A stretch of 64,000 nucleotides of DNA from the IMG/VR virus record IMGVR_UViG_3300047157_000197, positions 186,001 to 250,000 of that record. One strand, given 5' to 3'. The notes beneath the pieces are model-generated. The model did not search any database, was not told the DNA's origin, and was given only the letters and a program-made list of their open reading frames with translations. How positions within the stretch are numbered: position 1 is the stretch's first letter; each line of letters begins with the position of its first letter. Shown here in pieces: positions 51-51,986 of this stretch. The translations under genes and the position numbers were made by a program.

Positions 51-82
51 TTTGGAAATACCAAATAAATTTCGTATATTTG
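51..82 (+). promoter_or_regulatory. Bacteroidota sigma70-type (early/middle) promoter
   Basis: TTTG (51-54), 20-nt spacer, TATATTTG (75-82), matching the -33 TTTG / -7 TAnnTTTG consensus; 54-95 is an exact 42-bp copy of 13358-13399. Confidence 0.8.
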
Positions 83-103
83 TATAACAAATAAATAAAC
101 TAT

Positions 104-346
104 ATGGCAAACATTAAATTTGTACATCAAGAAGAAAAACAAATTAAAATAAAGGGAACTCCTAAAGTTCCATTTACTAAGAGCAAAAAATTAACTAGTA
201 TGACTGGTGGTAACCCGTTATATTATATTGATATTGAAGAAGCATTTAAATTAAAATTAGATTCTGTCTGTAATTTCACTCAAAAACATCCTCAAGACGA
301 GAATTATGCTCTTATCACTATTCCAATAAATCGAGAAGAAAATTAA
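104..346 (+). CDS. hypothetical protein
   Basis: 80-aa ORF directly after the promoter, A-rich leader. Confidence 0.6.
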   Translation: MANIKFVHQEEKQIKIKGTPKVPFTKSKKLTSMTGGNPLYYIDIEEAFKLKLDSVCNFTQKHPQDENYALITIPINREEN

Positions 347-357
347 AATATAAATTT

Positions 358-558
358 ATGTCAAAAACCGCATGGTTTTTTAGTAATAGGTTACGAGGGG
401 AATCTCATCCCAGGTCAAAATTAACATCTGAACAAGTAATCCAAATAAGAGAACTTTATTCTAAAGGATTTTCTACTAATGTAATTGCCCGAAACTTCAA
501 AGTATCGGCTTGGAATGTAGAAGAAATTTGTAAAAGAAGAACCTGGACTCATTTATAA
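358..558 (+). CDS. small HTH DNA-binding protein (resembles the C-terminal HTH of phage HNH endonucleases)
   Basis: RGESHPRSKLTSEQVIQIR...IARNFKVSAWNVEEICKRRTW pattern. Confidence 0.6.
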   Translation: MSKTAWFFSNRLRGESHPRSKLTSEQVIQIRELYSKGFSTNVIARNFKVSAWNVEEICKRRTWTHL

Positions 559-571
559 ACAAAATTAAAAT

Positions 572-1270
572 ATGACAGTTATAGAAGCAACTTCACCTGG
601 TGATGCTTGGGTAAAAGTATCAAAACATTTATTAGAACATGGTGTAAGAGTAGGTAATCTTACAGAAGAACTTAATGTGATTACCGAAATCACAGAATTT
701 AAATCAGATGATTGGTTTGATGGACACTTCAGAGAAATTATGGGAGATGATAGAATTGATTTCGCTAAAACAGTAACCTTTCTTAAACCAGAACAAAAGA
801 AATCAGATAACCCATTCTTTGATGAGGGAGAGGGATTAGATTATAAATTTATTAAAGACCATTACCATCAATCCTATTGGGGTAGAATGGTATCTTGGAG
901 AGGTGAATTTAATCAAATAGAAAATGTAATCAAAATTCTATCAACTGGTAAAGCAGTAAAACGATGTGAACTTATTATTTTTGACCCTAAGAAAGATGCA
1001 AGGAATCCATATTCACAACCTTGTATGGTTATGATTGATTTAAAACCAAGAAATGGTAAATTATATCTAACATCAGTACTTCGTTCAAATAGAGTATCTA
1101 AAAGTGGTTATGCAGATTACACAGCATTAACCGAAATGGGACATTTCCTTGCTGAACAAAGTGGATTAGAATTAGGAAAAGTAACTACCCTCGCTTGTTC
1201 GTGTCATATTGGTGATATGGATAATGAAAAAAAGAAAACAAACAAGTTATTAGAAGTATTAAATAGATAG
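572..1270 (+). CDS. thymidylate-synthase-fold protein, dCMP hydroxymethylase-like (atypical active site)
   Basis: YWGR; catalytic PC; RSNRVSKSGYADY aligns with T4 gp42 RSNDVVFGFRNDY; SCH motif near the C-terminus. Confidence 0.75.
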   Translation: MTVIEATSPGDAWVKVSKHLLEHGVRVGNLTEELNVITEITEFKSDDWFDGHFREIMGDDRIDFAKTVTFLKPEQKKSDNPFFDEGEGLDYKFIKDHYHQSYWGRMVSWRGEFNQIENVIKILSTGKAVKRCELIIFDPKKDARNPYSQPCMVMIDLKPRNGKLYLTSVLRSNRVSKSGYADYTALTEMGHFLAEQSGLELGKVTTLACSCHIGDMDNEKKKTNKLLEVLNR

Positions 1271-1271
1271 T

Positions 1272-2777
1272 ATGTGTGGAATCGTGGCAACAATTGGATA
1301 TTCTCGTAATGAGGTAGACGATATGTTAGAAGTTATTTCTCATCGAGGTAAAGATAATAGAGGAATAGAAGAATTTGATTATAATGGTAAAAAAGTATGC
1401 TTAGGACATAATCGTTTATCTATTAATGATATATCTCCTTTAGGCAACCAACCAATGAGTTTTGAAAATACTCACTTAATTGTAAATGGTGAGATTTGGA
1501 ACTACCCACAACTTAGAAAAGAATATGAAGAACGAGGATATATTTTTAAATCATCATCAGATTCGGAAATTATATTATACCTTTATAAAGAAAATGAATT
1601 ACAGAGATTAGATGGAATGTTTTCCTTTGTTATATATGATGATAACAAATTAATATTATCTCGTGATTGGGTTGGTAAAATACCTCTTTACATCTATAAT
1701 ACAAACAAATATATTGTTGCTAGTGAATTAAAATCTATACTTGGATATAATGAAACATCAGATATTAGATTCGTTCCAAAAAACTCATTAGTAGAGATTG
1801 ATTTAGATACTGATGAATTTAAAGTAACTAGCGATTTTTATTTTAAATGGTCATCGGATGTAACAAAACCAAAATCAAGTAAAGAAGTTGGTGAAACCAC
1901 ATTTAAATTATTAGAAAGAGCAGTAGATAAACGATTATTATCAGATGTTCCAATTGCAACATCATTAAGTGGAGGTATTGATTCTGCTATTATAACTTAC
2001 TTACTTAAACAAAGAATACCAAGTATCAAAGCATATACAATTGCATTTGACCAAGATTCAAAAGATTTACAAAAAGCAAGAGTTTGTGCAAAAAGTATTG
2101 ATGTAGAACTTGTTGAGGTATTTGTACCAAAAGATGAAAAAATTATTAAACAGAGATTTTTTGATTCAATTAATGTTATTGAATACCCATCAACTGTACA
2201 AATGGAAGTTGGTATATTACAATCATTTATTGCAGAGGAAATGGTTAAAGATGGAATCAAAGTTGCTTTTAGTGGAGAGGGTTCTGATGAATCATACGGT
2301 TCATATGGAACGTTTAGAATGTTCAGTAAGAAACCAGATTGGAGTGATGTTAGAAAAAACTTATTTGAAAAACAACACTATGGTAATTTATTAAGAGGTA
2401 ATACAATCTTTATGAATTATGGAACAATTGAATTAAGGTGTCCATTCTTTGATACAGAGTTTCTACAATATACAACAAATCTACAAGATGAATTTTTATC
2501 AGATAAAGTACAATGGAAAAAACCACTTGCTGATGCATTTAGAGGAAAGTTACCAGATGAAATATTAGACCAAGAGAAAAGGGCTTTTCAAAAAGGTACA
2601 AACTTTAAAGAATATATCGAAGATATTATTTTGAATGATTCTGAAATAAATTTTAAAAATAGAAAAAAAATGTTTCACGTCATTTGTGATAACTTTGAAA
2701 AAATAAATGGGTTTTCTCACAAAAAACTTAGACAACCAATTACAAATAATAATATAGGAATCTACAAATGGGTATAA
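1272..2777 (+). CDS. asparagine synthetase B-like glutamine amidotransferase
   Basis: N-terminal MCGI Ntn nucleophile, HRG, HNRLSI, NGEIWN, SGGIDS PP-loop, GEGSDE, ELRCPFFD. Confidence 0.9.
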   Translation: MCGIVATIGYSRNEVDDMLEVISHRGKDNRGIEEFDYNGKKVCLGHNRLSINDISPLGNQPMSFENTHLIVNGEIWNYPQLRKEYEERGYIFKSSSDSEIILYLYKENELQRLDGMFSFVIYDDNKLILSRDWVGKIPLYIYNTNKYIVASELKSILGYNETSDIRFVPKNSLVEIDLDTDEFKVTSDFYFKWSSDVTKPKSSKEVGETTFKLLERAVDKRLLSDVPIATSLSGGIDSAIITYLLKQRIPSIKAYTIAFDQDSKDLQKARVCAKSIDVELVEVFVPKDEKIIKQRFFDSINVIEYPSTVQMEVGILQSFIAEEMVKDGIKVAFSGEGSDESYGSYGTFRMFSKKPDWSDVRKNLFEKQHYGNLLRGNTIFMNYGTIELRCPFFDTEFLQYTTNLQDEFLSDKVQWKKPLADAFRGKLPDEILDQEKRAFQKGTNFKEYIEDIILNDSEINFKNRKKMFHVICDNFEKINGFSHKKLRQPITNNNIGIYKWV

Positions 2778-3613
2778 TACAAACACCAATAGAAGAATAT
2801 CAACTTAAAGGTAAAACTGTTTATGTCAAACGAGATGATTTGGTTGGTGATGGTGTAAACTATCCACGATGGGCAAAGGTTGAAGGTATAAGAAAGATTA
2901 TAGAATCAGATTATATTGATAAATCAAAACCACTCACACACCTTTCAGTATATGGAAGTTGGACAGGTTGGACATTATCTAAAATGTGTAAAGAATATGG
3001 TATTGAGTTTATTTCATCATACCCAGATTCTAAAACATATCCACCAGAACTATTAGAAATTATTAAAAGTAATGGGGCAACATTGAATCCAATGAAACCA
3101 AATATGATGAAACTGCTTGAGAATAAATTAGGTGGTATCGCAAAAAAGAATGGTTGGCAACAACTACCATATGCTTTTAATCATCCTACTTACATAAATT
3201 ATATGCAAAATAGAATGAAAGATGTATTAGCAGAACAAGATTTTGACCACCTTGTTGTATCAATTGGTAGTGGTGTAACTGCATCTGGTTTAATTCGAGA
3301 ATTTTTACAATATAAAGATTGGAAAGATATTCTTAATAACAAAAGAAAAGTTCATACAATTACAATGTCTGCAATACATTCTACTCAAAAGATTCTCAAT
3401 GAAAATAAAGCAGGAGATTTAAACAATATTAATATTTACAAATCCCCATTTGAGTTTAATGATTTAATGGAAGATTATTCTGTTCCATTTGATTGTAATG
3501 AATTTTGGGATAAGAAAATGTGGTTTTGGTTAGAAGAAAATATTGAATCACTAGATGGTAAAATACTATTTTGGAACATTGGTGGTTCTTATCAAACATC
3601 ATTAGGATTATGA
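2768..3613 (+). CDS. fold-type II PLP-dependent enzyme (ACC deaminase/D-cysteine desulfhydrase-like)
   Basis: TPIEE...VYVKRDDL...WAK (likely PLP lysine), VVSIGSGVTASGL phosphate loop, C-terminal FWNIGG. Confidence 0.75.
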   Translation: MGIIQTPIEEYQLKGKTVYVKRDDLVGDGVNYPRWAKVEGIRKIIESDYIDKSKPLTHLSVYGSWTGWTLSKMCKEYGIEFISSYPDSKTYPPELLEIIKSNGATLNPMKPNMMKLLENKLGGIAKKNGWQQLPYAFNHPTYINYMQNRMKDVLAEQDFDHLVVSIGSGVTASGLIREFLQYKDWKDILNNKRKVHTITMSAIHSTQKILNENKAGDLNNINIYKSPFEFNDLMEDYSVPFDCNEFWDKKMWFWLEENIESLDGKILFWNIGGSYQTSLGL

Positions 3614-4842
3614 CAAACGGCGAAGATATATTAGCAAAATATAGGAAGGATATATTTGAAGGAGATTTTCCAACAATTTCAGAAAATGATTGGGAAACTT
3701 TAAAAGAATCATATCCAAAAGACCAAGTAAAAGAAATGTTGGCTGAACTTTTTATGGAATATCCAATACCCTATGCAGAAATTAGTGAAGAAAATGCTTA
3801 CAATGATTACCTTAAACTAAAAGCTTTTCGCTGGATAGAATATCTAAAGGAAGGTGAGTGGTTCCCAAGAAAAGCAGCTGAATCAAAATATCCATTAACA
3901 TATAATGGAAAACAACAATTCTTTTCTCGTATTAATACAGGTAATAGGGCATCTAATTACTTTCAACAGCACAACAGATGGTCAGTAGATGGTTCAGTTT
4001 CTCCAGGTCCAAAAAGGACATGGGAAACCAAAGCATTTATGAAATCACTAATGGGTTCAGCTTATTCTTTAAAATTACCACAAGTTGGTAAAAAAGAATT
4101 AAGAACAATGATTGGGTTACGCAAGTACATATGTGCTCAGTTCAAGCCAAATGTAGCCAAGATGTTTTATGATATGAATAATGCCAAGACCGTACTTGAT
4201 TTTTCAATGGGCTGGGGAGATAGGTTAGCAGGGGCTTTCTCAAGCGAAACTGTTGAACATTATGTAGGACTAGACCCTCGTAAAGAGAATCACCCTATCT
4301 ATGAACAACAAAGAGATTTCTATACCAAACATACATCTTTCTTCGAGAACCCAACTAAAACAACGTTCTATGAATCACCAGCAGAAGATTTTGATTACTC
4401 TGAATATAATGAGTACTTTGATATAGTATTTACATCACCTCCATATTTCTCAGTAGAAAGATATTCACATGATGATACTCAAAGTTGGGTAAGATATAAA
4501 AACATTGATGTGTGGAATGAACATTTCTTACATAAGGCACTTGGAAAGATTATACCAACGGTAAAAAAAGGTGGGATAATTGCAGTAAACATAGCTGATG
4601 TATATGCAAGTTCTAAAGGAGGAAAAGATTGGTTAGAAATATGTAATCCAATGATTGATTTCCTAACATCACAAGGATTAACTTACAAAGGTTGTATTGG
4701 TATGGAAATGGCAAAGAGACCTAATAGTGGTGGAGCAGGAACTGCTAAAGATGATGGACAGTATTCAGAGGAAAGTTTAAAATTAGCAGAAGAAACACAA
4801 AATCAAACTTTTTGTGAACCAATTTGGATAATTCAGAAATAA
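3610..4842 (+). CDS. SAM-dependent amino-methyltransferase-like DNA modification enzyme (SPPY type)
   Basis: VLDFSMGWGDR motif I, YVGLDP, FTSPPYF motif IV; ATG at 3610 overlaps the upstream TGA, so it is preferred over the 3571 start. Confidence 0.8.
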   Translation: MTNGEDILAKYRKDIFEGDFPTISENDWETLKESYPKDQVKEMLAELFMEYPIPYAEISEENAYNDYLKLKAFRWIEYLKEGEWFPRKAAESKYPLTYNGKQQFFSRINTGNRASNYFQQHNRWSVDGSVSPGPKRTWETKAFMKSLMGSAYSLKLPQVGKKELRTMIGLRKYICAQFKPNVAKMFYDMNNAKTVLDFSMGWGDRLAGAFSSETVEHYVGLDPRKENHPIYEQQRDFYTKHTSFFENPTKTTFYESPAEDFDYSEYNEYFDIVFTSPPYFSVERYSHDDTQSWVRYKNIDVWNEHFLHKALGKIIPTVKKGGIIAVNIADVYASSKGGKDWLEICNPMIDFLTSQGLTYKGCIGMEMAKRPNSGGAGTAKDDGQYSEESLKLAEETQNQTFCEPIWIIQK

Positions 4843-4854
4843 TTCGTATATTTG
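4823..4854 (+). promoter_or_regulatory. Bacteroidota-type promoter for DNA polymerase
   Basis: TTTG 4823-4826, N20, TATATTTG 4847-4854. Confidence 0.75.
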
Positions 4855-4878
4855 TATAAATAAATAAAACAGAACAGA

Positions 4879-7395
4879 TTGTATCAAAACATTTATTACC
4901 AGAGAGAAAGAAATTTAATCCATTTATGGGATGACCAGAGAGGATATTCTGCATTTCCATATACAAGATATGCGTATGAGAAATCTTTAAGAGGTGAGTA
5001 TAAATCTATTTATGGAGATACACTAACCAAAATTTATAAATTCAAAGGAGATAATCCTGATTTATTTGAATCTGATGTACCCGAAACTACAAGGGCTTTA
5101 GTAGATTTATATTCTGAATCTGATGAACCATCAGAAGGTCATGTTATTCTTACTTATGATATTGAGTGTGAAATGTTAAGTGGATTGCCAGACCCACAAG
5201 AAGCTAAAAACGAATTAACTTCAATTGCACTTCATGATTCAGCAACAAACCAATATTGGGTATTAGTTGTTGATAAGGAAGGTGGTATGAAAGAAAAAAC
5301 TACCGATAAATGTATCGTATTTCCATTTCAAGATGAACGAGATATGTTAATGAAGTATTTGGAATTATATGAAATGATTAATCCATCAATCGTTACAGGT
5401 TGGAATATTGATTATTTCGATACACCAATGTTATACAACAGAATCAAAAGATTATTAGGAGAAAAACATGCTAATAGATTATCACCAATCGGTAAATGTT
5501 TCTGGTCACCATATCGTAAGAGATATTTTATGGCAGGTGTATCTTATTTAGATTATATTGAACTTTATAAGAAATACAACTATGGTGAACTTCCAAACTA
5601 TCGATTAGATACAGTTGCACAAATAGAATTAGGTAGAGGTAAGATTGAATATCAAGGAAACTTAGACCAATTATTCAGAGATGATATTGAAAAGTTCATT
5701 GAGTATAACTTAGTGGATGTTGAATTGGTTGTAGGATTTGAAGAAAAACTTGAATTTATAGATTTATGTAGAGGTATTGCACATGCAGGTCATGTACCTT
5801 ATGAAGATTTTGTATATTCATCAAAGTATCTTGAAGGAGCAATGTTAACATATCTACGAAGAAAAGGATTAGTTGCACCAAACAAACCAGCAGATAGACG
5901 TGAAAGAATGGAAGCTCTTAAAGAATCTGGTTCTGAAAAGTTTATAGGAGCTTATGTAAAAGCACCAATCGTTGGTAAGTATGATTGGATATATGATTTA
6001 GATTTAACATCTCTATATCCATCTATTATTATGACTCTAAATATATCACCAGAAGCAAAAGTTGGAAAAGTTCAAGATTGGGATGCAAATAAGTTTGTTA
6101 AAGGTGAAGTTGATACTTATCGTATTGGTGAAGATACTATCACAAAAGAAAATTTAAAGAAATATTTAGAACAATCTAAATTTTCAATAGCATCAAATGG
6201 TGTACTTTACCGAACAGATAAAGTAGGTTGTATTCCAGGTATTCTAAACTTATGGTTTGATAAAAGGGTAGAATATAAAAACGAAATGAAAAAATATGGA
6301 AAAGCAGGAAACAAAGCAAAATATGCCTTCTTTCACAAACGTCAGTTGGTTCAGAAAATTTTACTTAACTCTTTATATGGTGTGCTTGGGCTTCCTGCCT
6401 TTAGGTTCTATGATGTTGATAATGCTACCGCTGTTACCACGACAGGACAGACAGTTATTAAATCAACTGCGGATATGGCTAATATCAAGTACAACAAGGA
6501 GCTTAATACTCCTGATGCTGACTCTAATATATACATTGATACTGATTCAGTATTTTTCTCAGCAGTTCCTTTAATGGATAAAAGATTTCCTAATTGGAAA
6601 GATGAAGAACAAGATACAATTGCTGGTTATGTAAATGATATTGCAGAAGAAATGCAAGATTATTTAAATGATTTCTATGATATACTTTCAAAAAAAGTTT
6701 TAAATGTAGATAAAGATAAACATAGATTAGAGATTAAAAAAGAATATGTTGCAAAAGCAGGATTGTGGATTGCAAAGAAAAGATATGCACAATGGATTAT
6801 ATCAGATAATGGTGTACCAGTTGATAAGTTAGATGTAAAAGGTTTAGATGTTAAACGAAGTTCGTTTCCAAAAGCATTCCAAGAATGTATGGGTACAGTT
6901 TTGATTGATATTCTAAAAGGTAAATCAGAAGAAGAAATTTCAGATTATGTTTTAGATTTTAAAAAGAAAATGGTAAACAGACCTACATCTGAGATTGCAA
7001 AGAACTCAGCGGTAAAGAATCTTAAAAAATATATGCCGAAAGGTAAGAGAGAACCGTTTACAATGATGAAAGGAACACCTGCCCATGTTAAAGCAGCAAT
7101 CTTATATAATGATTGTTTGAAACATTTCAATGCACCTTTCAAATATGAACCAATGAAAAATGGTGATAAGGTAAAATGGGTATATCTTAAAGATAATCCA
7201 CTAGGAATCGATGGATTAGCATTTAGTGGATATAACGACCCAAAAGAGATAGAAGAATTTATTGCAACATATATTGACTATAATAAAATCTTTGAAAGAG
7301 AATTAAAAGGTAAACTACAAGATTTCTTCGATGCTATTGGTTGGGGAGATGTTGTAAGTGAACAACGAACTGCAGAAAAGTTCTTCAGTTTTTAA
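4879..7395 (+). CDS. family B DNA polymerase (T4 gp43-like)
   Basis: exonuclease YDIE and GWNIDYFD; polymerase DLDLTSLYPS, KILLNSLYG, YIDTDS, KKRY; TTG start. Confidence 0.97.
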   Translation: MYQNIYYQRERNLIHLWDDQRGYSAFPYTRYAYEKSLRGEYKSIYGDTLTKIYKFKGDNPDLFESDVPETTRALVDLYSESDEPSEGHVILTYDIECEMLSGLPDPQEAKNELTSIALHDSATNQYWVLVVDKEGGMKEKTTDKCIVFPFQDERDMLMKYLELYEMINPSIVTGWNIDYFDTPMLYNRIKRLLGEKHANRLSPIGKCFWSPYRKRYFMAGVSYLDYIELYKKYNYGELPNYRLDTVAQIELGRGKIEYQGNLDQLFRDDIEKFIEYNLVDVELVVGFEEKLEFIDLCRGIAHAGHVPYEDFVYSSKYLEGAMLTYLRRKGLVAPNKPADRRERMEALKESGSEKFIGAYVKAPIVGKYDWIYDLDLTSLYPSIIMTLNISPEAKVGKVQDWDANKFVKGEVDTYRIGEDTITKENLKKYLEQSKFSIASNGVLYRTDKVGCIPGILNLWFDKRVEYKNEMKKYGKAGNKAKYAFFHKRQLVQKILLNSLYGVLGLPAFRFYDVDNATAVTTTGQTVIKSTADMANIKYNKELNTPDADSNIYIDTDSVFFSAVPLMDKRFPNWKDEEQDTIAGYVNDIAEEMQDYLNDFYDILSKKVLNVDKDKHRLEIKKEYVAKAGLWIAKKRYAQWIISDNGVPVDKLDVKGLDVKRSSFPKAFQECMGTVLIDILKGKSEEEISDYVLDFKKKMVNRPTSEIAKNSAVKNLKKYMPKGKREPFTMMKGTPAHVKAAILYNDCLKHFNAPFKYEPMKNGDKVKWVYLKDNPLGIDGLAFSGYNDPKEIEEFIATYIDYNKIFERELKGKLQDFFDAIGWGDVVSEQRTAEKFFSF

Positions 7396-7412
7396 AAATA
7401 TATACGAAAAAA

Positions 7413-7444
7413 TTTGTTAATCACAAATAATTTTCGTATATTTG
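7413..7444 (+). promoter_or_regulatory. Bacteroidota-type promoter, embedded in an inverted repeat
   Basis: TTTG 7413-7416, N20, TATATTTG 7437-7444. Confidence 0.75.
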
Positions 7445-7477
7445 TACAAATATAAATTATAATTAAGTAAATAAACA

Positions 7478-8191
7478 ATGGAAAAACAATCATTAAACAG
7501 GTTTGTATCAAAATACAACCTCGCAGGTTTAGTAGAATCTGTAAAGTGGGAATCAAAAGATGGTTCTCTAACTACTTCTTTTATTTCTGATGATAAATCA
7601 GTATTAGGAAGTGTAAGTATGAAAGAGTTTGATACTTCAGATGCATCTTTTGGTGTATATGATACTTCAAAACTTACAAAAATGTTATCAGTTCTTGGTA
7701 ACGATGTAGATTTCTCAATCAATGATATTGATGGGAAACCAGTTTCTTTGAAATTCAAAGATGGTTCAACAAATGTAAATTATATGTTAGCTGATTTATC
7801 AGTTATCCCTAATGTACCAGATTTGAAACAATTACCACCATTCAATGTGGAAATTAAATTAGATGCAAACTTTATCTCAAAGTTTATTAAAGCAAAAGGT
7901 GCTTTAGCTGATGAGAATAACTTTACATTTACTTGTAAAGATGGTGCTGGTCAAATTATTTTAGGTTATTCAAATATTAACACAAACAGAATTAACATAG
8001 ATGTTGACTGTACTTGTGAAAAAGATGTTGACCCAATTTCTTTTTCGGCAACATACTTAAAAGAGATACTAGTTGCAAACAAAGAGGCTACTGATGCAAT
8101 TTTAAAGATTTCATCTCAAGGATTATCACATATCTCTTTTTCAATCGATAACTACGAATCAAATTATTATTTAGTAGAAATACAAGCTTAA
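7478..8191 (+). CDS. sliding clamp (gp45/PCNA-like)
   Basis: 237 aa, FGVYDTSKL and YMLAD resemble T4-like gp45; adjacent to the polymerase. Confidence 0.8.
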   Translation: MEKQSLNRFVSKYNLAGLVESVKWESKDGSLTTSFISDDKSVLGSVSMKEFDTSDASFGVYDTSKLTKMLSVLGNDVDFSINDIDGKPVSLKFKDGSTNVNYMLADLSVIPNVPDLKQLPPFNVEIKLDANFISKFIKAKGALADENNFTFTCKDGAGQIILGYSNINTNRINIDVDCTCEKDVDPISFSATYLKEILVANKEATDAILKISSQGLSHISFSIDNYESNYYLVEIQA

Positions 8192-9828
8192 TGAGTGATA
8201 AACACTTTTACGAAAGAAGTAAGTTTTCCGAGTTTAAATCCAATACTACTTATCATCAGTTGTTAGAAATGACTGATGATGAGTTTGTGGTATGGGCTCG
8301 TTTACTCCGTAAAGAGGTTACTACACAATGGGATGAAAGAGGAACTCCACCAGTAATTGGTAGAGATGAAGATGGTATTATTGAAAAGTTTAAGAAACTT
8401 AAATCTAATCCATCTAATTATTGGATTAAAGATGTAACTGATGATACAGAATCATTGGGTATCATTAAAAACTTTAATAAAGATGCATCAGTTGTAAATC
8501 AGTTTTTTCCTACAATGTTAAAAACTAAGATATCAACAGGTAAATCTGCAGATGGTGGTTTATCTATTTATGACCATTTTTCAGACCCTACGTTAGAAGA
8601 TAAGTTTGTTAAAATAATGAAACGAGCAGTTAAAAGAGATTCAATGTACTCTTGGTCTCGTTCAATTGTTGATAAGAAAGATGAAAATCCTTTTTGGACT
8701 GGACAAAATATAGTTCAATTTGTAAAAGATGTTCATAATGATAAAGTTTTTAAAGGAAAATATAAAAATTTAAGTATTGTTCTTGCAAAGGCTAAATCAT
8801 CTACATTAGAAAATTATGGTACATTCAATGAAGAGTTTGTTGGATATGGTAATTTGTATATGTCTGCAGATGAAGTGAATAAATTAGTTGATGAGGGGTA
8901 TTTAAATACAACTCAAACTTCTAATTTAGGTGAGATAGTTGATTCAACAACATCTGATGCAGGAACTGTTACTACTTATAAATATTTAATTCGTTGGTAT
9001 GATAAAACAGATGGTATCTTTCCAAAAATATTACAAGTATTTAGATTAAGTTGTGGACAACCAGCAGTAAACTTCCCAGCATTAACTGCTAAATGGATTT
9101 ATGAAAACTATACTAAACATATAGATGATGATGAACCATTACATATTTATGATTCATCAAGTGGTTGGGGTGGTAGAATCTTAGGAGCAATGAGTTCTCG
9201 TAAGAAAATTCACTATGTTGGTACAGACCCTAATCCTGATAACTTCTTAAATGAAGAAGGTATTTCTCGTTATGAGTACATGGCTAAGTTTTATAATGAT
9301 AATTGTGTAGATGATTATTCAGATAAACTTACATCATTCTTTGATGTAACACCACAAGGTAACACCTATGAGTTATTTCAAAATGGTTCAGAATTAATCT
9401 CAAACAATCCTAAGTTTCAAAAGTATAAAGGTAAATTAGATATTTCATTTACTTCACCTCCTTACTTTAATAGAGAACAATATTCACAAGATGAGAATCA
9501 ATCGTTCAAAGCTTATGGTGAATATGAAGATTGGAGAGATAACTTTTTAAGACCTACTCTAACAACAATCTATGAATATCTTAAAAACGATAGATATATA
9601 CTATGGAATATTGCAGATATTAAAATCGGTAAATCAATTTACTATCCATTAGAACAAGATTCAATTGATATCTTAAATGAATTAGGTTGTGAATATAAAG
9701 GTAAACTTAAAATGTTAATGACACGAATGGTTGGATTAGACCCATCTAAGAGTGGAATAAAAAATTCAGTTCAATACGAAGGAAAGGCATATAAATTTGA
9801 ACCAATCTTCGTTTTTTATAAACCTTAA
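8191..9828 (+). CDS. second SPPY-type methyltransferase-like DNA modification enzyme
   Basis: NFPALTAK, YDSSSGWGGR, YVGTDP, FTSPPYFNREQYS; paralogue of 3610-4842 including the C-terminal EPIF/EPIW. Confidence 0.8.
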   Translation: MSDKHFYERSKFSEFKSNTTYHQLLEMTDDEFVVWARLLRKEVTTQWDERGTPPVIGRDEDGIIEKFKKLKSNPSNYWIKDVTDDTESLGIIKNFNKDASVVNQFFPTMLKTKISTGKSADGGLSIYDHFSDPTLEDKFVKIMKRAVKRDSMYSWSRSIVDKKDENPFWTGQNIVQFVKDVHNDKVFKGKYKNLSIVLAKAKSSTLENYGTFNEEFVGYGNLYMSADEVNKLVDEGYLNTTQTSNLGEIVDSTTSDAGTVTTYKYLIRWYDKTDGIFPKILQVFRLSCGQPAVNFPALTAKWIYENYTKHIDDDEPLHIYDSSSGWGGRILGAMSSRKKIHYVGTDPNPDNFLNEEGISRYEYMAKFYNDNCVDDYSDKLTSFFDVTPQGNTYELFQNGSELISNNPKFQKYKGKLDISFTSPPYFNREQYSQDENQSFKAYGEYEDWRDNFLRPTLTTIYEYLKNDRYILWNIADIKIGKSIYYPLEQDSIDILNELGCEYKGKLKMLMTRMVGLDPSKSGIKNSVQYEGKAYKFEPIFVFYKP

Positions 9829-10050: not shown

Positions 10051-12759
10051 ATGAGAAAACTATTATTAGTTGGATTGATGCTCTTAATGAGTATCACTAC
10101 TTTTGCACAAATTAGTGGAAAAGTAATTGACAGCGAAACTAATGACCCTCTACCAGGAGCAACCATTATCGTTCAAGGAACGGCGGATGGAACTGTAACT
10201 GGTTTTGATGGAACATTTAGTATCGATGTTGAAGAAGGAACAATTCTTATTGTTTCTTACTTGGGTTATGAAACTGCTGAAATTTCAGCTGGTATTGATT
10301 CGGATATTATAGGATTATATCCTGATTTGAATCAACTAGGTGAAGTAGTAGTAACTTCTGGTGTAATTGATATTGCAAAGGTAAGAACAACTCCGGTTGC
10401 TGTATCTACAATTTCACCTGCAGAAATTGCTTTAAAAGTAGGTAACCAAGAGTTTCCTGAAATCATGAACAAAACTCCAGGAGTTTACGCTACCAAACAA
10501 GGTGGTGGTTATGGTGATTCAAGAATCTCTTTAAGAGGATTCGACCAAAGAAACACATCATTCCTTATCAATGGGCAACCAGTAAATGATATGGAAAATG
10601 GATGGGTATATTGGTCTAACTGGCAAGGTTTAACAGATGTTGCGAGTGGAATCCAATTACAAAGAGGCCTTGGTGCTTCAAGATTAGCAGTACCATCAGT
10701 AGGTGGTACTGTTTCTATTTTTACAAAGGCTGCAGAAGCTAAAAAGGGCTCATCTATACAACAATCAGTTGGTAACGATGGATACTTTAAAACTACTGCA
10801 GCAGTATCAACAGGATTAAATGATAATGGGTGGGCTACATCTGTGTTACTTTCTAAGTGGCAAGGTGATGGTTATATCTATAACACAAAAGGAGAGGGTT
10901 ACACTTACTTCTTTGCGTTAGGATATGCACCTGAAGATTCAGACCATTCTGTTAACTTTTCTTTCTTAGGTGCTGGACAATGGCATCATCAAAGAGATGT
11001 ATGGGTTTCTATTAGAGATTACCAAAACTTTGGTAGTGAAGGAATCGATAGAAGATGGAATTCCAATGGTGGTGTTTTAAATGGTGAAGAATTCTCAATG
11101 AGAAGAAACTTCTATAACAAACCATTAGCAACATTAAATTGGGATTGGGAAATCAACGATAACCTTAAACTAGCTACATCATTATATGGTTCAGCTGGTA
11201 GAGGTGGTGGAACAGGACCAAGAGGTAGAAATTACTACAACTCGGAAACTGATATCTTACCTTTCAGAAAAGACCTTACAGAACACTACTTAGAAAATGG
11301 TAGAGGTTCAAGAACTCCTGAAGGATTTATTGATTTTGATGCAGTTGTTGCATTTAACCAATCAAACACAGACCCATATAGTGGTGATTTACCATTTGCT
11401 GGTCAGTTAATTGGTTCTAATGGATTCCAAGATGATGGTGTTAATAGAAGTGCACTTGTAAGAAGAGCATCTATGAACTCTCATGACTGGGTTGGAGCAA
11501 TTTCTAACTTAGAATATGAAAGTGGTGATTGGAAATACTCAATAGGAGTAGATTTAAGAAACTACACAGGTTATCATTATAGAACTATAAATAACCTAAT
11601 GGGATTAGATGGATATTACTCAACGGGTAATAAGAATTCTGCTGGTCAGATTATCAACACTACAATCGAAGCTTCTCCGTTCAATGATACAGGTATCAGA
11701 GGACCGAAGATAGATTATTATAATGTTGGTAAAGTTGGATGGCAAGGATTAAATGGTTTAGTTGAATATAACAACGAAACTATTTCAGCTGTATTACAAG
11801 TAGGTGGTTCTAATCAATCTTTCCAAAGAATTGATTACTTTGACCAACCAGGTAATCCAGAATCAGATACTAAGAATGTAGATGGTGGATACATCAAAGG
11901 TGGTGCAAACTACAATATTGATGAGAAACAAAACGTATTCTTTAATGCTGGTGTGATTTCAAGACAACCACAATTCGGTGCTGTATTCCCTAACTATGGA
12001 AATGCAATCAACGAAGATTTACAAAACGAAGAAATTAAATCATTCGAATTAGGATATGGTTTCATTGGTAGTAACTTTAAAGTTAATGTTAATGCATATT
12101 CAACAGTATGGGGTAATAGATTCGTTCAAAGAAGTTTATCTAACCAACAAGGTGTAGATGGTTCAGCTCAATTTAAAGATATCGATGTATCACACAAAGG
12201 TATTGAAATTGAAACTTCTTATAACCCAACAGATAAGTTGAGATTAAAAGGTATGTTATCAATCGGTGATTGGAAATATACTAAAGATTTCGATGCAGAA
12301 TTATTTGATGATAATCAACAATCAATCGGTACAGGTACATTATACCTAAAAGATGCTAAGGTAGGAGATGCTGCTCAGTTCACATCTTACTTCGAGGCGG
12401 ATTACCAAGTATTCGATAAACTAAGAGTTGATTTAGGATATAGATTTGTTGATGGATTATATGCTGATTATTCAATTACAGATTCAGAATTTACTCAACC
12501 TGGTAACAAGGGAGCTTTAAAATTACCATCTTATGGATTGGCTGATTTAGGAGCAACTTACAGATTTGATTTATTCGGAAATAGTAGTTCGTTTAGAGTT
12601 AATGTAAATAACTTGTTTGATACTTACTACATAGCAGAATCTAATACTAATATTCATGCTGGAGATGCTTCAGAAACATGGAATGGTGTAGATACAAGAA
12701 ACTCAGTATGGTTCGGATTCGGACGTACTTTCAATGCTTCTCTAAAAGTAAGATTCTAA
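10051..12759 (+). CDS. TonB-dependent outer-membrane receptor
   Basis: signal peptide ending TFA-Q; CarboxypepD_reg-like N-domain (ISGKVIDSETNDPLPGATI); plug (EVVVT, SLRGF, LINGQP); barrel with NNLFD..Y and terminal Phe. Confidence 0.93.
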   Translation: MRKLLLVGLMLLMSITTFAQISGKVIDSETNDPLPGATIIVQGTADGTVTGFDGTFSIDVEEGTILIVSYLGYETAEISAGIDSDIIGLYPDLNQLGEVVVTSGVIDIAKVRTTPVAVSTISPAEIALKVGNQEFPEIMNKTPGVYATKQGGGYGDSRISLRGFDQRNTSFLINGQPVNDMENGWVYWSNWQGLTDVASGIQLQRGLGASRLAVPSVGGTVSIFTKAAEAKKGSSIQQSVGNDGYFKTTAAVSTGLNDNGWATSVLLSKWQGDGYIYNTKGEGYTYFFALGYAPEDSDHSVNFSFLGAGQWHHQRDVWVSIRDYQNFGSEGIDRRWNSNGGVLNGEEFSMRRNFYNKPLATLNWDWEINDNLKLATSLYGSAGRGGGTGPRGRNYYNSETDILPFRKDLTEHYLENGRGSRTPEGFIDFDAVVAFNQSNTDPYSGDLPFAGQLIGSNGFQDDGVNRSALVRRASMNSHDWVGAISNLEYESGDWKYSIGVDLRNYTGYHYRTINNLMGLDGYYSTGNKNSAGQIINTTIEASPFNDTGIRGPKIDYYNVGKVGWQGLNGLVEYNNETISAVLQVGGSNQSFQRIDYFDQPGNPESDTKNVDGGYIKGGANYNIDEKQNVFFNAGVISRQPQFGAVFPNYGNAINEDLQNEEIKSFELGYGFIGSNFKVNVNAYSTVWGNRFVQRSLSNQQGVDGSAQFKDIDVSHKGIEIETSYNPTDKLRLKGMLSIGDWKYTKDFDAELFDDNQQSIGTGTLYLKDAKVGDAAQFTSYFEADYQVFDKLRVDLGYRFVDGLYADYSITDSEFTQPGNKGALKLPSYGLADLGATYRFDLFGNSSSFRVNVNNLFDTYYIAESNTNIHAGDASETWNGVDTRNSVWFGFGRTFNASLKVRF

Positions 12760-13372: not shown

Positions 13373-13386
13373 ATTTCGTATATTTG
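13355..13386 (+). promoter_or_regulatory. Bacteroidota-type promoter
   Basis: TTAG-N20-TATATTTG; 42-bp identity with the promoter at 54-95. Confidence 0.8.
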
Positions 13387-13409
13387 TATAACAAATAAAA
13401 ATAGATAAA

Positions 13410-13626: not shown

Positions 13627-14577
13627 ATGGCATTTTTCGAGGATAATAACACAACTAAGAAGGTAAACAACTCTCTATGGGTAGAGAAGTATAGACCGTC
13701 TAAACTAACAGAATACGTTGGTAATGAACATTTAAAGGATAAGGTAAAGGATTATCTTGAAAGTGGAGAAATCCCTCATCTTTTATTCTTCGGTAAAGCT
13801 GGAACAGGTAAAACAACTCTAGCTAAGTTAATTGTAAATTCAATTGATTGTGACCATATCATTATAAATGCATCTGATGAAAACAATGTAGATACAGTTC
13901 GTAATAAAGTAAAGGGATTTGCTTCAACTGTTGGTTTCAAAGATATGAAAATAATCATACTTGATGAGTTTGATTATATGACACCAAACGCACAGGCAAT
14001 CCTAAGAAACTTAATGGAAACGTTTTCAAGACATTGTAGATTTATCCTAACTTGTAATTATGTTGAGAAAGTAATCTCACCAATTAGAAGTAGAACACAA
14101 GAGTTTCAGATTGTACCTCCAACTAAAAAAGATGTTGCAATCCAAATCTCACAGATTTTAGGTAAAGAAGTTGTAAGTTTTCAACCAAAAGACCTTGTAC
14201 CTATCATTGATAGTTCATATCCTGATATTAGAAAGATTATTAATACTTGTCAGTTAAATTCATCTAAAGGACAGCTAAAACTTGATACAACCTCTGTAAT
14301 TGATTCTGATTTAAAATCAAAGGTAGTTGAGATTATTAAGGGAAATGATTCCAAACCTAACAAGTGGAAAAATATTAGACAAGCAGTTGCTGATTCTCGT
14401 ACACAAGATTTCACAGAACTTTATACATTCTTATATGAAAAGGTAGATGAGTATGGTGGTTCAAATACATCTAATATAATATTAATCTTATCAGAATCAC
14501 AACACAAAGATGCATTAGTAGTAGATAAAGAAATTACTTTTATGTCTTGTATAATTCAAATAATAGGAATACTGTAA
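13627..14577 (+). CDS. clamp loader AAA+ subunit (gp44/RFC-like)
   Basis: LWVEKYRP, GKAGTGKT, INASD, IILDEFD, SR sensor. Confidence 0.95.
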   Translation: MAFFEDNNTTKKVNNSLWVEKYRPSKLTEYVGNEHLKDKVKDYLESGEIPHLLFFGKAGTGKTTLAKLIVNSIDCDHIIINASDENNVDTVRNKVKGFASTVGFKDMKIIILDEFDYMTPNAQAILRNLMETFSRHCRFILTCNYVEKVISPIRSRTQEFQIVPPTKKDVAIQISQILGKEVVSFQPKDLVPIIDSSYPDIRKIINTCQLNSSKGQLKLDTTSVIDSDLKSKVVEIIKGNDSKPNKWKNIRQAVADSRTQDFTELYTFLYEKVDEYGGSNTSNIILILSESQHKDALVVDKEITFMSCIIQIIGIL

Positions 14578-14588
14578 CTATATAAATT

Positions 14589-14807
14589 ATGAAGTACGAC
14601 CATGATAATCCACTTACTGAAGAAGCATTAGAAATATTAGGAAAAGAAGATTTCGATTCTTTTCTTGAATATCTTGATGGAATGTCAGAGTATAAGAAAA
14701 GAAAAAAAAATCCAAGAGTACAAGAACATAAAGAAAAAAAACGAGAAGTTCTTAGAAAAACTGGTATAACAAAAATTAAAACAAATCGTGACCAATGGTT
14801 CGATTAA
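14589..14807 (+). CDS. hypothetical protein
   Basis: 72-aa ORF within the operon. Confidence 0.55.
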   Translation: MKYDHDNPLTEEALEILGKEDFDSFLEYLDGMSEYKKRKKNPRVQEHKEKKREVLRKTGITKIKTNRDQWFD

Positions 14808-14818
14808 ATAAATAAATT

Positions 14819-15085
14819 ATGGCAAAAATAGTAGGAATGAATGGTGGTAATCAACCACATCAACAACCAAAAGTAGACTTAAAACAAGCTAAAGAAATGG
14901 TTTGTACAAGTGGTGAATGTGATGGAAGTGTATTCATACAAGGAACTAAATTTCTGAAGTTATCAAAGATAGCAACAGGACAACCTAAAGATGCAATCAT
15001 ACCAGTAGAATTATATCTATGTGGGGATTGTGGTGAAATAAACTCAGATTTATTACCTGATGAGTTAAAACCAATTATATCATAA
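14819..15085 (+). CDS. small zinc-ribbon protein
   Basis: CTSGEC...CGDC. Confidence 0.55.
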   Translation: MAKIVGMNGGNQPHQQPKVDLKQAKEMVCTSGECDGSVFIQGTKFLKLSKIATGQPKDAIIPVELYLCGDCGEINSDLLPDELKPIIS

Positions 15086-15086
15086 A

Positions 15087-15536
15087 ATGGCTAAATCTTT
15101 ATTTGACCACATAAAGGCAGTAACACAATTTCAAGACCCAAAGTATTGGGATAAACTTGAAGATAGTGATAAGAAAACTTGGAGTAACTATATGGTACAT
15201 CGTTTTCTTTCTATGAATTCCGATTGGATACAAGTTCTTTCTGAGATACAACCATATACTCAAACATTAGAACCTAAGCAGTTATATCTTGCCTTAATTG
15301 GATTAATTCCAAAAGGTAGGTATTATTTAAAATATACTAAAGGAAAGCGAGAAACTAAATATGAAAGTTTTTTATTAGAACTGATTATTCAAGATTTTCA
15401 ATGTTCTTCATTAGAAGCGTTTGATTATTGTGAAATCCTTTATTCAACAAAAGAAGGTAGAGAAAATATCAAATATATGTGTGAGAAATATGGTATTGAT
15501 AAAAAACAAATTACAAAATTAAAATTAAAGGTATGA
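15087..15536 (+). CDS. clamp loader small subunit (gp62-like)
   Basis: LFDHIKAV...NYMVHRFLSM...IPKGRYYLKY pattern; near the gp44-like gene. Confidence 0.7.
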   Translation: MAKSLFDHIKAVTQFQDPKYWDKLEDSDKKTWSNYMVHRFLSMNSDWIQVLSEIQPYTQTLEPKQLYLALIGLIPKGRYYLKYTKGKRETKYESFLLELIIQDFQCSSLEAFDYCEILYSTKEGRENIKYMCEKYGIDKKQITKLKLKV

Positions 15537-20074: not shown

Positions 20075-20352
20075 TGAGTAAACCAATCTTTATAGTTAGA
20101 TTACCAGGTTATTGGAATCCTAAACAATTTGATATATCAAGAAAAGCAATTTACGATAGAAAAGAACTATCAACGGATTATCATGTATTGGTATTATCTG
20201 ATAACGAAATTGAAACTATAAGATTTGAATGCTATAACTCACCCCATGAATCAGAAAAGTTAGAAGAAATAACAAAACTAACTCAAATATCAATCGAAAG
20301 ATGTTTGAGAAACGAAGAAGAAAACCGATTAAGAGAATTAGACAATGAATAA
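20074..20352 (+). CDS. hypothetical protein
   Basis: translationally coupled ORF. Confidence 0.55.
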   Translation: MSKPIFIVRLPGYWNPKQFDISRKAIYDRKELSTDYHVLVLSDNEIETIRFECYNSPHESEKLEEITKLTQISIERCLRNEEENRLRELDNE

Positions 20353-27698: not shown

Positions 27699-27711
27699 TT
27701 TCGTATATTTG
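27680..27711 (+). promoter_or_regulatory. Bacteroidota-type promoter
   Basis: TTTG-N20-TATATTTG. Confidence 0.7.
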
Positions 27712-27720
27712 TAAGTAGAT

Positions 27721-51977: not shown

Positions 51978-51986
51978 AATAAAGTT

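Follow-up and report, generated by a model that had tools for sequence, protein, structure and literature searches.

Known systems for phage base hypermodification
Modified DNA bases let phages escape bacterial nucleases, and several of the enzymes that make them have been characterized. In Synechococcus phage S-B43, the CmoA/CmoX/CmoY system pairs a Cx-SAM synthase (CmoA) and a Dcm-type enzyme (CmoX) with CmoY, an asparagine-synthetase-like AMP-forming ligase; SpCmoY has been shown experimentally to amidate 5-carboxymethylcytosine in DNA (PMC12783734). In phages M6 and ViI, which carry the hypermodified thymidines 5-NedU and 5-NeOmdU, the pyridoxal phosphate (PLP) enzyme gp52 of M6 is a proven decarboxylase of amino-acid adducts on DNA (PMC8989533, PMC5889632). 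A third group comprises the TS homologues that modify dCMP, including the T4 gp42 hydroxymethylase, the RB69/DLP3 5-hydroxy-dCMP synthase and MilA (PMC13326640).

Here, the window is a stretch of 64,000 nucleotides from the viral record IMGVR_UViG_3300047157_000197 (positions 186,001 to 250,000). Next to its DNA polymerase gene are four tightly linked genes that look like a previously undescribed mix of enzymes decorating DNA bases, most likely cytosine, with an amide- or amino-acid-bearing side chain.

Organization of the cassette
The original prediction described four tightly coupled genes downstream of one promoter and immediately before the polymerase, and this observation was confirmed (Table 1). 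Spacing between the genes is a 1-nt gap, a 10-nt overlap and a 4-nt overlap. The last gene was first called from a TTG start at 3571, but the ATG at 3610 is the likelier start, as it forms an ATGA overlap with the PLP stop and as the orthologue in a related locus (L007) starts exactly at the PLP stop. The promoter is a 17-nt promoter-like motif, TTCGTATATTTGTATAA, with 6 matches in the window at up to 2 mismatches against 0.05 expected, and exact copies lie ahead of orf80, PolB and the clamp-loader block. The motif contains TAnnTTTG, the Bacteroidota -7 consensus. One nuance is that two small ORFs lie between the first motif and the TS-like gene, so that the unit holds six genes. The first of these gave no family hit and is present in only some relatives, while the second matched HTH_38 (2e-4), resembles the C-terminal part of HNH endonuclease phrogs and occurs upstream of the TS-like gene in most group-A loci. 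Ribonucleotide reductase and thioredoxin genes lie just upstream.

Table 1. Positions of features in the window.
Position	Strand	Length	Feature
71..87	+	17 nt	Promoter-like motif that opens the unit
104..346	+	80 aa	Small ORF of unknown function, first gene of the unit
358..558	+	66 aa	Small HTH protein, conserved just upstream of the TS-like gene
572..1270	+	232 aa	Divergent TS-fold pyrimidine-C5 enzyme, dCMP-type (predicted)
1272..2777	+	501 aa	Glutamine-dependent AsnB-like AMP-forming amide ligase, CmoY-like, glutamine type (predicted)
2768..3613	+	281 aa	Fold-type II PLP enzyme, homologue of phage M6 gp52
3610..4842	+		SPPY-motif class I methyltransferase-like protein (MT1) with an N-terminal domain of unknown function
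4843..4859	+	17 nt	Second copy of the promoter-like motif, ending the unit and starting the polymerase unit
4879..7395	+		Family-B DNA polymerase (PolB)
7433..7449		17 nt	Promoter-like motif, 1 mismatch
8191..9828	+		MT2, a paralogue of MT1 (same SPPY domain)
13375..13391		17 nt	Promoter-like motif
about 18.7-30.2 kb			GT4, GT2 and GT1 genes, UDP-glucose dehydrogenase, an epimerase, a nucleotidyltransferase, a DegT aminotransferase and an acetyltransferase

Enzymes encoded by the cassette
The TS-like protein passed the Pfam Thymidylat_synt cut-off (28.6 bits against 24.3), whereas its TIGR03283 match (2e-22) was below cut-off, and its best PDB match was MilA, a CMP hydroxymethylase. The catalytic Cys151 is conserved, as are R171-S172, Y102 and H212. 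Asp occupies the N177 position, a change that switches TS enzymes to dCMP (PMC8670742, PMC13326640), while Ser is found at L143 and Arg at D169.

The AsnB-like protein matched Asn_synthase (4.8e-40) and GATase_7 (1.3e-31). Its glutaminase residues and PP-loop are intact, but the aspartate-site TTxR motif and D384 are not conserved, and derived features are shared by all phage AsnB-likes, including gp124 of Streptomyces phage TurkishDelight. The protein is 31% identical over 93% of its length to gp124, which is flanked by a Dcm-like and a CmoA-like gene, and its synthetase domain aligns with SpCmoY (E 1e-7). Sister phages carry a standalone, non-orthologous CmoY-like ligase in its place, and this family (PP308) matched SpCmoY with 97.4% probability in hhalign.

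The PLP protein matched PALP only below cut-off (1.8e-7), but it is a full-length homologue of M6 gp52. A tblastn comparison gave 28% identity at 97% coverage (E 2e-18), and hhalign gave 99.7% probability, with a shared C-terminal PFxCNxF(W/Y)DxKxWxWL...FWNIG signature and K37 aligned to gp52 K36. The Lys is invariant, a GSGVT loop is present, and the AF2 model (pLDDT 92) resembled D-cysteine desulfhydrase and ACC deaminase in Foldseek (TM about 0.7). The only cultured-phage relatives of this protein are gp52-type enzymes, and the family was not found in 185,579 representative bacterial and archaeal genomes.

The methyltransferase-like protein gave only weak hits, to N6_N4_Mtase (2.6e-4, below cut-off) and phrog_12517. 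An F(T/S)SPPYF motif IV is conserved in all paralogues and distant relatives. Foldseek searches with the AF2 model (pLDDT 82) returned only generic class I MTases, with CmoB among the top hits at TM 0.3-0.4 (E about 1e-6).

Conservation across phages
Co-occurrence of the genes in related phages, set beforehand as a test of the prediction, was borne out, and the arrangement is not chance. The order TS, then ligase, then PLP was found in every one of 46 TS-anchored IMG/VR loci with enough flank and in many more PLP-anchored loci. Among 41 distinct PLP-anchored loci with at least 3.5 kb on each side, the ligase accompanies the PLP gene in 38, an MT-like gene in 38 and the TS-like gene in 31, while the other 10 carry a 2-hydroxyacid dehydrogenase instead of the TS-like gene. 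This replacement was seen in one distant lineage (group D). The MT-like gene changes position between relatives and is missing within the sequenced flank of 3 loci, yet it is part of the conserved set even in very distant phages. In fact, the MT-like, PLP and ligase trio persists in T4-like phages whose PolB is only 31% identical. In a sister lineage, MT2 sits immediately upstream of the TS-like gene. The TS-like gene and a CmoY-like ligase are also adjacent in two further lineages (loci L048 and L050), where a B12-type radical SAM enzyme is fused or adjacent instead of the PLP gene. The polymerase itself (DNA_pol_B, 1.1e-38) is 52% identical to the PolB of Microcystis phage Mel-JY01, in which no TS-like, AsnB-like, PLP or MT-like gene was found among the features annotated within 12 kb of polB, nor by tblastn there.

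Proposed mechanism
The interpretation given in the original prediction was partly supported. Homology agrees with a TS-fold enzyme acting on a cytosine nucleotide, with a PLP enzyme that processes an amino-acid-derived group, and with an amidotransferase that turns a carboxylate into an amide, and the prediction was right that no amino-acid:DNA transferase is present in the window, none having been found nearby. It proposed that a SAM enzyme may add a final group, which remains conjectural, as do the order of the steps and the identity of the final base. It also knew of no characterized pathway with this combination, and did not know the closest characterized relative of the AsnB-like enzyme, the CmoA/CmoX/CmoY system.

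The explanation favored here, with moderate confidence, is a phage DNA-hypermodification cassette expressed with the replication genes. Gene order, residues, homology and synteny are what the analysis shows; every reaction below is inferred from these alone, direct demonstration on DNA being confined to the relatives SpCmoY and gp52. First, the TS-fold enzyme would attack C6 of dCMP with Cys151 and place a non-methyl substituent on C5 at the nucleotide level, before replication. The substrate class follows from residues, while the product could be either hydroxymethyl-type or a carboxyl-bearing unit. The neighboring PolB would then incorporate the modified nucleotide. On the DNA, the AsnB-like enzyme would work as a glutamine-dependent CmoY-type ligase, adenylating a carboxylate carried by the modified base and converting it to a carboxamide with ammonia from its own glutaminase domain, while the standalone ligase of sister phages probably joins a different amine. 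The gp52-like enzyme would form an aldimine with a free alpha-amino group of an appended amino-acid moiety and decarboxylate or otherwise trim it, as gp52 is shown to do on DNA. Finally, and least certainly, the SPPY MT-like enzyme would either methylate a base or the new side chain, or transfer a larger SAM-derived group that supplies the handle.

Several findings weigh against this scheme. No CmoA or CmoX homologue was found in the window or any fetched locus, and no 5-hmU DNA kinase or aGPT-Pplase was found either, although only about 72 kb of a 276-kb genome was seen; the delivery of a carboxyl or amino-acid handle to the base, and how the ligase and PLP enzyme share it, is therefore unexplained. 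A primary-amide-forming ligase and a decarboxylase would compete for a single carboxylate. The AsnB-like protein scores above the TIGR01536 cut-off (284 against 267.1) and keeps two of the three residues of the aspartate amino-group pocket. The TS-like gene may not be integral, considering its absence from group-D cassettes.

Alternative explanations
A second, doubtful but conceivable explanation is that the SPPY enzyme installs the handle and is not a methyltransferase. Like CmoX or CmoB, it would transfer a carboxyl-bearing group onto an exocyclic amine (N4 of C or N6 of A) in DNA, either carboxymethyl from host Cx-SAM or 3-amino-3-carboxypropyl from SAM, for tailoring by the CmoY-like ligase and the gp52-like enzyme, while the TS-like enzyme would make a separate or prerequisite C5 modification. 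Conservation of the trio where the TS-like gene is absent, the motif shared by all MT-likes and the appearance of the Cx-SAM enzyme CmoB among the structural hits favor this view, and there is precedent for an MTase homologue repurposed for carboxymethyl transfer (PMC12783734). A SAM-derived aminocarboxypropyl group would also carry both an alpha-amine and a carboxylate. However, the structural similarity is weak and generic, no CmoA was seen, MT1 is variable in position and not always present in the sequenced flank, and its relatives in Bacteroides phages stand alone among unrelated genes. Moreover, the authors of PMC12783734 found no N6/N4 carboxymethyltransferase linked to CmoA.

It is unlikely that these are four unrelated auxiliary genes that merely share an operon, with the TS-like protein supplying dTMP, the AsnB-like protein making asparagine, the PLP enzyme being a cysteine synthase or threonine dehydratase, and the MT-like protein being an orphan anti-restriction DNA methyltransferase. 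JGI does annotate relatives as thymidylate synthase and cysteine synthase, TIGR01536 is passed, ribonucleotide reductase and thioredoxin genes lie just upstream, and several MT paralogues suggest plain methylation. Against this stand the N177D, L143S and D169R changes, the loss of TTxR and D384 and the non-orthologous ligase replacement in the same slot, the restriction of cultured-phage PLP relatives to gp52-type enzymes with none found in cellular genomes, and the translational coupling and conserved order across divergent phages.

Equally unlikely is glycan tailoring, in which the amidotransferase and PLP enzyme would modify a sugar (for example uronic acid to uronamide) attached by the downstream glycosyltransferase cluster to hydroxymethyl- or hydroxy-cytosine made by the TS-like enzyme: the window carries glycosyltransferase and nucleotide-sugar genes at about 18.7-30.2 kb (Table 1), AsnB-like amidotransferases are known to act in polysaccharide pathways and glycosylated cytosines made through TS homologues are known (PMC13326640), but the ligase and PLP genes are coupled to the TS-like and MT-like genes rather than to the sugar cluster 14 kb away, their closest characterized relatives (CmoY and gp52) act directly on DNA bases, and group-D cassettes sit between the clamp loader and other genes with no adjacent sugar cluster.

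Comparison with known systems
As in the S-B43 system, an asparagine-synthetase-like AMP-forming ligase is found next to a cytosine-C5 enzyme, and the ligase of the window resembles the uncharacterized glutamine-amidase cluster of CmoY homologues. The cassette differs in that no Dcm-type CmoX or CmoA was found, in that the C5 enzyme has a TS fold and probably acts on dCMP rather than on DNA, and in the addition of a gp52-like PLP enzyme and SPPY MT-like proteins.

With the M6 and ViI systems, the cassette shares a gp52-family PLP enzyme with the same Lys and C-terminal signature, a TS-fold enzyme that supplies a C5 handle before replication (inferred here), and a location among replication genes. 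It differs in that no 5-hmU DNA kinase, aGPT-Pplase amino-acid:DNA transferase or SPL-like radical SAM isomerase was found, in a TS-like enzyme that is dCMP-type rather than a dUMP hydroxymethylase, and in the presence of a PP-loop ligase instead.

The dCMP-modifying TS homologues share the catalytic Cys, the phosphate-binding Arg-Ser and the Asp at the N177 position, and glycosyltransferase and nucleotide-sugar genes lie elsewhere in the same genome. The TS-like protein is much shorter, however, and nearest to the small archaeal-type TS (TIGR03283), with Ser rather than Asp/Glu at L143 and an Arg at D169 that is neither the folate-type Asp nor the 5hoC-type Asn.

Finally, asparagine synthetase B shares the Ntn glutaminase domain and PP-loop synthetase domain with the AsnB-like protein, in which the TTxR motif and D384 are replaced, the C-terminal region is shortened, and the score falls far below the AsnB equivalog NF006949 (251 against 499).

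Genomic Organization of the Cassette

The window (positions 186001-250000 of a 275,970-bp viral contig from IMG metagenome 3300047157) is AT-rich, with a GC content of about 29%, and nearly all of its long ORFs lie on the + strand. The original prediction described four tightly coupled genes downstream of one promoter and immediately before the DNA polymerase, and this observation is confirmed, with the one nuance that two small ORFs precede the four genes. The gaps and overlaps between them are 1 nt, -10 nt and -4 nt, and the more likely start of the methyltransferase-like (MT-like) gene MT1 overlaps the stop of the PLP-enzyme gene as ATGA. A 17-nt motif, TTCGTATATTTGTATAA, occurs on either side of the unit and also precedes the clamp gene and the clamp-loader block, giving six matches against 0.05 expected. 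The unit is therefore motif, orf80, HTH protein, TS-like, AsnB-like ligase, PLP, MT1, motif and PolB. No tRNA genes were found in the 64 kb.

Features of the window and of related loci
Sequence	Position	Feature
Window	71-87	17-nt motif, first copy
Window	572-1270	TS-like gene
Window	1272-2777	AsnB-like gene
Window	2768-3613	PLP-enzyme gene
Window	from 3571 (TTG, as listed) or, more likely, 3610 (ATG)	MT-like gene (MT1)
Window	4843-4859	17-nt motif, second copy
Window	from 4879	Family-B DNA polymerase
Window	10051-12759	Full-length SusC/RagA-like TonB-dependent receptor (CarboxypepD_reg, Plug and beta-barrel domains), between MT2 and the clamp-loader block
Window	15533-16780	Twitch-domain radical SAM protein (NF033640, 1.6e-93), after the clamp loader
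Window	18692-30212	Sugar cluster: GT4, GT2 and GT1 glycosyltransferases, NAD epimerase/dehydratase, UDP-glucose dehydrogenase, HAD plus nucleotidyltransferase fusion, cytidylyltransferase, DegT aminotransferase and GNAT, with a Cpn10 gene in the middle
Window	38548-40323	591-aa secreted protein with a low-complexity run of roughly 270 residues
Window	51207-54389	Methyltransf_24, APS-kinase-like protein, another radical SAM, cytidylyltransferase-like protein and 2OG-Fe(II) oxygenase
L002 (just upstream of the window)	3859-4858	Small class I methyltransferase (196 aa, 3859-4449) and SET-domain protein, between the two ribonucleotide reductase subunit genes
L030; L045 (relatives)	5371-6861; 13939-15408	GmrSD_N plus HNH protein, between PLP and PolB in L030 and between MT1 and PolB in L045
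L036; L013 (relatives)	11008-12242; 7357-7779	dUTPase-family protein and SAM lyase directly after the PLP gene, or PRA-PH/MazG-like pyrophosphatase just upstream of the HTH gene
L029; L028 (relatives)	6766-7938; 10462-12084	Variable inserts around the cassette: a P-loop plus GNAT acetyltransferase fusion between MT1 and the TS-like gene; a GroEL-type chaperonin, at different positions in different relatives
L059 (Streptomyces phage TurkishDelight)	89500-93518	ParB-like, Dcm-like, glutamine-type AsnB-like and CmoA-like set

The TonB-dependent receptor, together with the TAnnTTTG-containing promoter motif and the 29% GC content, points to a host in the Bacteroidota. The host is probably a low-GC freshwater member of that phylum. 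The sugar cluster may glycosylate DNA or a surface structure. The low-complexity run of the secreted protein grades from Gly/Ser through Asp/Ser to Glu-rich, its C-terminal domain, ending in Phe, looks like an outer-membrane beta-barrel, and the gene explains the local peak in GC and GC skew.

Conservation Among Related Phages

A nucleotide search of the four genes against 50,697 phage records returned nothing. A search of IMG/VR with the TS-like protein gave 46 loci at 73-100% identity, and wherever the flank suffices, the TS-like gene is followed by the ligase and then the PLP gene, with the same coupling. A search with a profile of the PLP family gave 183 related stretches, of which 80 loci were kept, and these fall into several arrangements. 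In group A, the window's own, the order is TS-like, ligase, PLP, MT1 (which sometimes sits upstream of the TS-like gene) and PolB. In group B it is MT2-like, TS-like, ligase and PLP. Two loci (L106 and L108) add a B12-type radical SAM gene. In group D, comprising T4-like phages with PolB only 31% identical, it is clamp, clamp loader, MT-like, PLP, 2-hydroxyacid dehydrogenase and AsnB-like. The window's own twitch-domain radical SAM is unrelated to the B12-type radical SAM that is linked to the TS-like gene elsewhere.

The co-occurrence of these families, which had been set beforehand as a test, was counted among 41 distinct loci with at least 3.5 kb on each side. The ligase was found within 4 kb in 38, an MT-like gene within 8 kb in 38, and the TS-like gene in 31. 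Two of the three apparent misses for the ligase have it just beyond the distance limit, and the 10 loci that lack the TS-like gene are exactly the 10 that carry the dehydrogenase. The conserved set is therefore MT-like, PLP and ligase, with the TS-like gene a lineage-wide but replaceable member. Mel-JY01, the closest cultured phage by PolB, shows no cassette gene within 12 kb of its polB.

A search of 1.84 billion representative proteins showed that the TS-like clade is small, with about 15 full-length clusters at 50% identity. One member, in locus L048, is a TS-like protein fused to a radical SAM domain, and it sits next to an MT-like gene, a standalone PP-loop ligase and an ATP-grasp-like gene. 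Another, in locus L050, sits between the same kind of ligase and a Dam-type methylase plus a radical SAM gene. The pairing of the TS-like gene with the ligase thus recurs in three lineages.

The GmrSD_N plus HNH protein, inserted beside the cassette in some relatives, resembles a type IV modification-dependent nuclease and may act in competition between phages with differently modified DNA. Enzymes such as the dUTPase-family protein, SAM lyase and PRA-PH/MazG-like pyrophosphatase typically accompany replacement of a canonical dNTP.

The TS-Like Protein

The TS-like protein matches Pfam Thymidylat_synt above the gathering score (28.6 bits against 24.3), although the match covers only residues 100-215. 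It is closest to the small methanogen-type TS model (TIGR03283, 2e-22, below cut-off), and among solved structures its best match is MilA, a CMP hydroxymethylase. The catalytic Cys and phosphate-binding Arg-Ser of ThyA (C146 and R166-S167) are represented by P150-C151 and R171-S172, which are invariant or nearly so, and the clade also keeps Y102, a Lys-Arg pair and H212. This points to a nucleoside monophosphate substrate and the usual Cys-C6 chemistry.

Three diagnostic positions differ from those of canonical ThyA. Position N177, which governs dUMP specificity, is Asp, a change that switches TS to dCMP (PMC8670742; PMC13326640). Position L143 is Ser in the window and Gly, Arg or Lys in relatives, and so is neither acidic, as in the L143D/E that accompanies N177D in T4-type dCMP hydroxymethylases, nor bulky and hydrophobic; a bulky residue here correlates with a methyl product (PMC13326640). 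Position D169 is Arg in the window and Arg or Ala in the clade, and is thus neither the folate-type Asp nor the Asn signature of 5-hydroxy-dCMP synthases of the RB69 gp48 type (PMC13326640). More distant small TS proteins keep D169 and N177, so these changes define the phage clade. It was concluded from these residues that the protein is a dCMP-type C5 enzyme with a non-methyl product that cannot be predicted.

The AsnB-Like Protein

The glutamine-site residues (Cys2, R48, N72-G73-E74 and D97), the PP-loop and the SGEGSDE motif of the AsnB-like protein are intact. Its scores against curated models are 284 for TIGR01536 (cut-off 267.1) and 251 for the AsnB equivalog NF006949 (cut-off 499). The TTxR motif (T322, T323 and R325 in E. 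coli numbering), which is assigned to aspartate and ATP binding (PMC5775275), reads V-Q-M-E here. Likewise, E. coli D384, which corresponds to human D400 and is part of the pocket for the aspartate amino group (PMC6748925), is Asn, while E348, D351 and R387 are kept. These changes are shared by every phage AsnB-like protein examined, including those of group B, group D and gp124 of Streptomyces phage TurkishDelight, to which the window's protein is 31% identical over 93% of its length.

TurkishDelight gp124 lies between a Dcm-type C5-cytosine methylase (gp123, which is not related to MT1) and a protein whose best match by far is the Cx-SAM synthase CmoA (2.6e-25), next to ParB-like genes. That is the architecture described in PMC12783734, where CmoA makes Cx-SAM, CmoX carboxymethylates C5 of cytosine in DNA, and CmoY, an asparagine-synthetase homolog, ligates an amine to the carboxylate. 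SpCmoY adds glycine, while a second large cluster of CmoY homologs carries a glutaminase domain and is predicted to use ammonia, but could not be expressed in soluble form. TurkishDelight, a cultured actinophage, is therefore a tractable candidate for making 5-carbamoylmethylcytosine.

In six sister loci of the window's own lineage, the AsnB-like gene is replaced by a 308-aa PP-loop protein (PP308), for which a PDB sequence search found nothing significant. This protein is homologous to the ligases next to the TS-like gene in L048 and L050 and to SpCmoY itself, as seen by tblastn and by hhalign (97.4% probability over 221 columns). The window's synthetase domain also aligns with SpCmoY (BLASTP E 1e-7, window residues 228-473 and SpCmoY residues 19-260). 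Two non-orthologous CmoY-type ligases in the same slot argue strongly against a housekeeping asparagine synthetase. A tblastn search with CmoA and CmoX of phages S-B43 and TurkishDelight gave no hit (E <= 0.01) in the window or any fetched locus, covering only about 72 kb of the 276-kb contig, and the small methyltransferase just upstream, in L002, is not CmoA-like. In the MetaGPA data, GATase_7 is not enriched in cytosine-modified contigs, and Asn_synthase and PALP gave no match in the part of the table that was searched.

The PLP Protein

The Pfam PALP match of the PLP protein falls below its cut-off, and a PDB sequence search found nothing, yet the family has an invariant Lys37 and a GSGVT loop. 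Its AF2 model (pLDDT 92) matches fold-type II enzymes, with a Foldseek TM of about 0.7 to 4d8u and 1j0a. Its only relatives among cultured phages are the gp52 proteins of M6, YuA-like and similar phages. It is 28% identical to M6 gp52 and matches phrog_7093 at 9.5e-24. Profile comparison by hhalign gives 99.7% probability over the whole length, with Lys37 aligned to gp52 Lys36 and a distinctive C-terminal signature shared. M6 gp52 and ViI gp226 are experimentally shown to decarboxylate amino-acid:thymine conjugates in DNA (PMC8989533). A scan of 185,579 representative genomes with the PLP profile found no relative. The partners that gp52 has in M6, namely the 5-hmU kinase (5-HMUDK), the aGPT-Pplase transferase (aGPT-Pplase2) and the SPL-like radical SAM, are absent here, as BLAST found no homolog of M6 gp51, gp53, gp54 or gp55 and no such Pfam family appears in the precomputed annotations.

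The MT-Like Proteins

MT1, MT2 and a third paralog in some relatives share a C-terminal class I domain in which the DFSxGWGD motif, corresponding to the glycine-rich motif I, and the F(T/S)SPPYF motif, corresponding to motif IV, (D/N/S)PP(Y/F), are invariant. SPPY is the amino-methyltransferase type of motif IV. The Pfam N6_N4_Mtase match is below its cut-off (21.4 bits against 26.7), and a PDB sequence search found nothing for MT1. The AF2 model (pLDDT 82) has a Rossmann methyltransferase fold, for which Foldseek returns only generic class I methyltransferases at TM 0.3-0.4, with CmoB among the top hits, which is a lead but not a test. A 52-residue similarity between the radical SAM protein of L050 and the N-terminal domain of MT1 was rejected as spurious, since it spans the CxxxCxxC site, which MT1 lacks. 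Relatives of MT1 occur alone in Bacteroides phages, where that of phage SJC03 lies among unannotated genes and its context is uninformative, while Vibrio phage relatives are annotated as N4-cytosine methylases. MT1 could methylate or transfer a larger group.

Possible Mechanisms

The best-supported reading is a hypermodification cassette, and in this respect the interpretation of the original prediction is partly supported. The synteny, the residue patterns and the homologies were established directly, and the activities of SpCmoY and gp52 are published, whereas the substrates and catalytic activities of the proteins in this phage, including amidation of a carboxylated base, decarboxylation of an amino-acid:base conjugate and methyl transfer to DNA, as well as the order of steps and the final product, are inferred. 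The main unexplained point is the origin of the carboxyl or amino-acid handle. Moreover, an ammonia-using ligase and a decarboxylase cannot both consume a single carboxylate, which could conceivably be resolved by a side chain with two carboxylates, by a PLP enzyme that builds the adduct rather than trimming it, or by a handle supplied by the MT-like enzyme from SAM or Cx-SAM. Two other readings, of unrelated auxiliary genes and of glycan amidation, are less likely.

It is also conceivable, though rather unlikely, that these phages build a carboxamide- or amino-alkyl-bearing base without any of the known handle-installing enzymes (CmoA/CmoX, or 5-hmU kinase plus amino-acid:DNA transferase). 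The short TS-fold enzyme, which has lost the folate-binding Asp, could put a carboxyl-bearing group on dCMP directly. Alternatively, the SPPY MT-like enzyme could be a natural N4/N6 carboxyalkyl or aminocarboxypropyl transferase, although the authors of the CmoX study looked for such an activity associated with CmoA and did not find one. Either route would give a new DNA base, for example a carbamoyl(hydroxy)methyl-cytosine or an N-carbamoylmethyl base.

Significance and Comparison with Known Systems

Phage DNA hypermodifications block restriction enzymes and CRISPR nucleases, and they supply new enzymes for DNA chemistry. The cassette is common in aquatic viromes, where 183 IMG/VR stretches encode the PLP relative and one TS-like cluster alone has 334 member sequences. 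Its resolution could reveal a new cytosine derivative, supply the missing activity of the glutamine-type CmoY cluster, and show a new way of attaching carboxyl or amino-acid groups to DNA.

Both key tailoring enzymes belong to families with a characterized member, so the cassette is not categorically new. The combination was not found in the literature searched, and PMC12783734 mentions neither PLP enzymes nor TS homologs. What differs is the joining of parts from two recently characterized toolkits, the CmoY amide ligase and the gp52 PLP decarboxylase, with an unusual dCMP-type TS-fold enzyme and SPPY MT-like proteins, in the absence of both CmoA/CmoX and the kinase and transferase that install the handle in the known systems.
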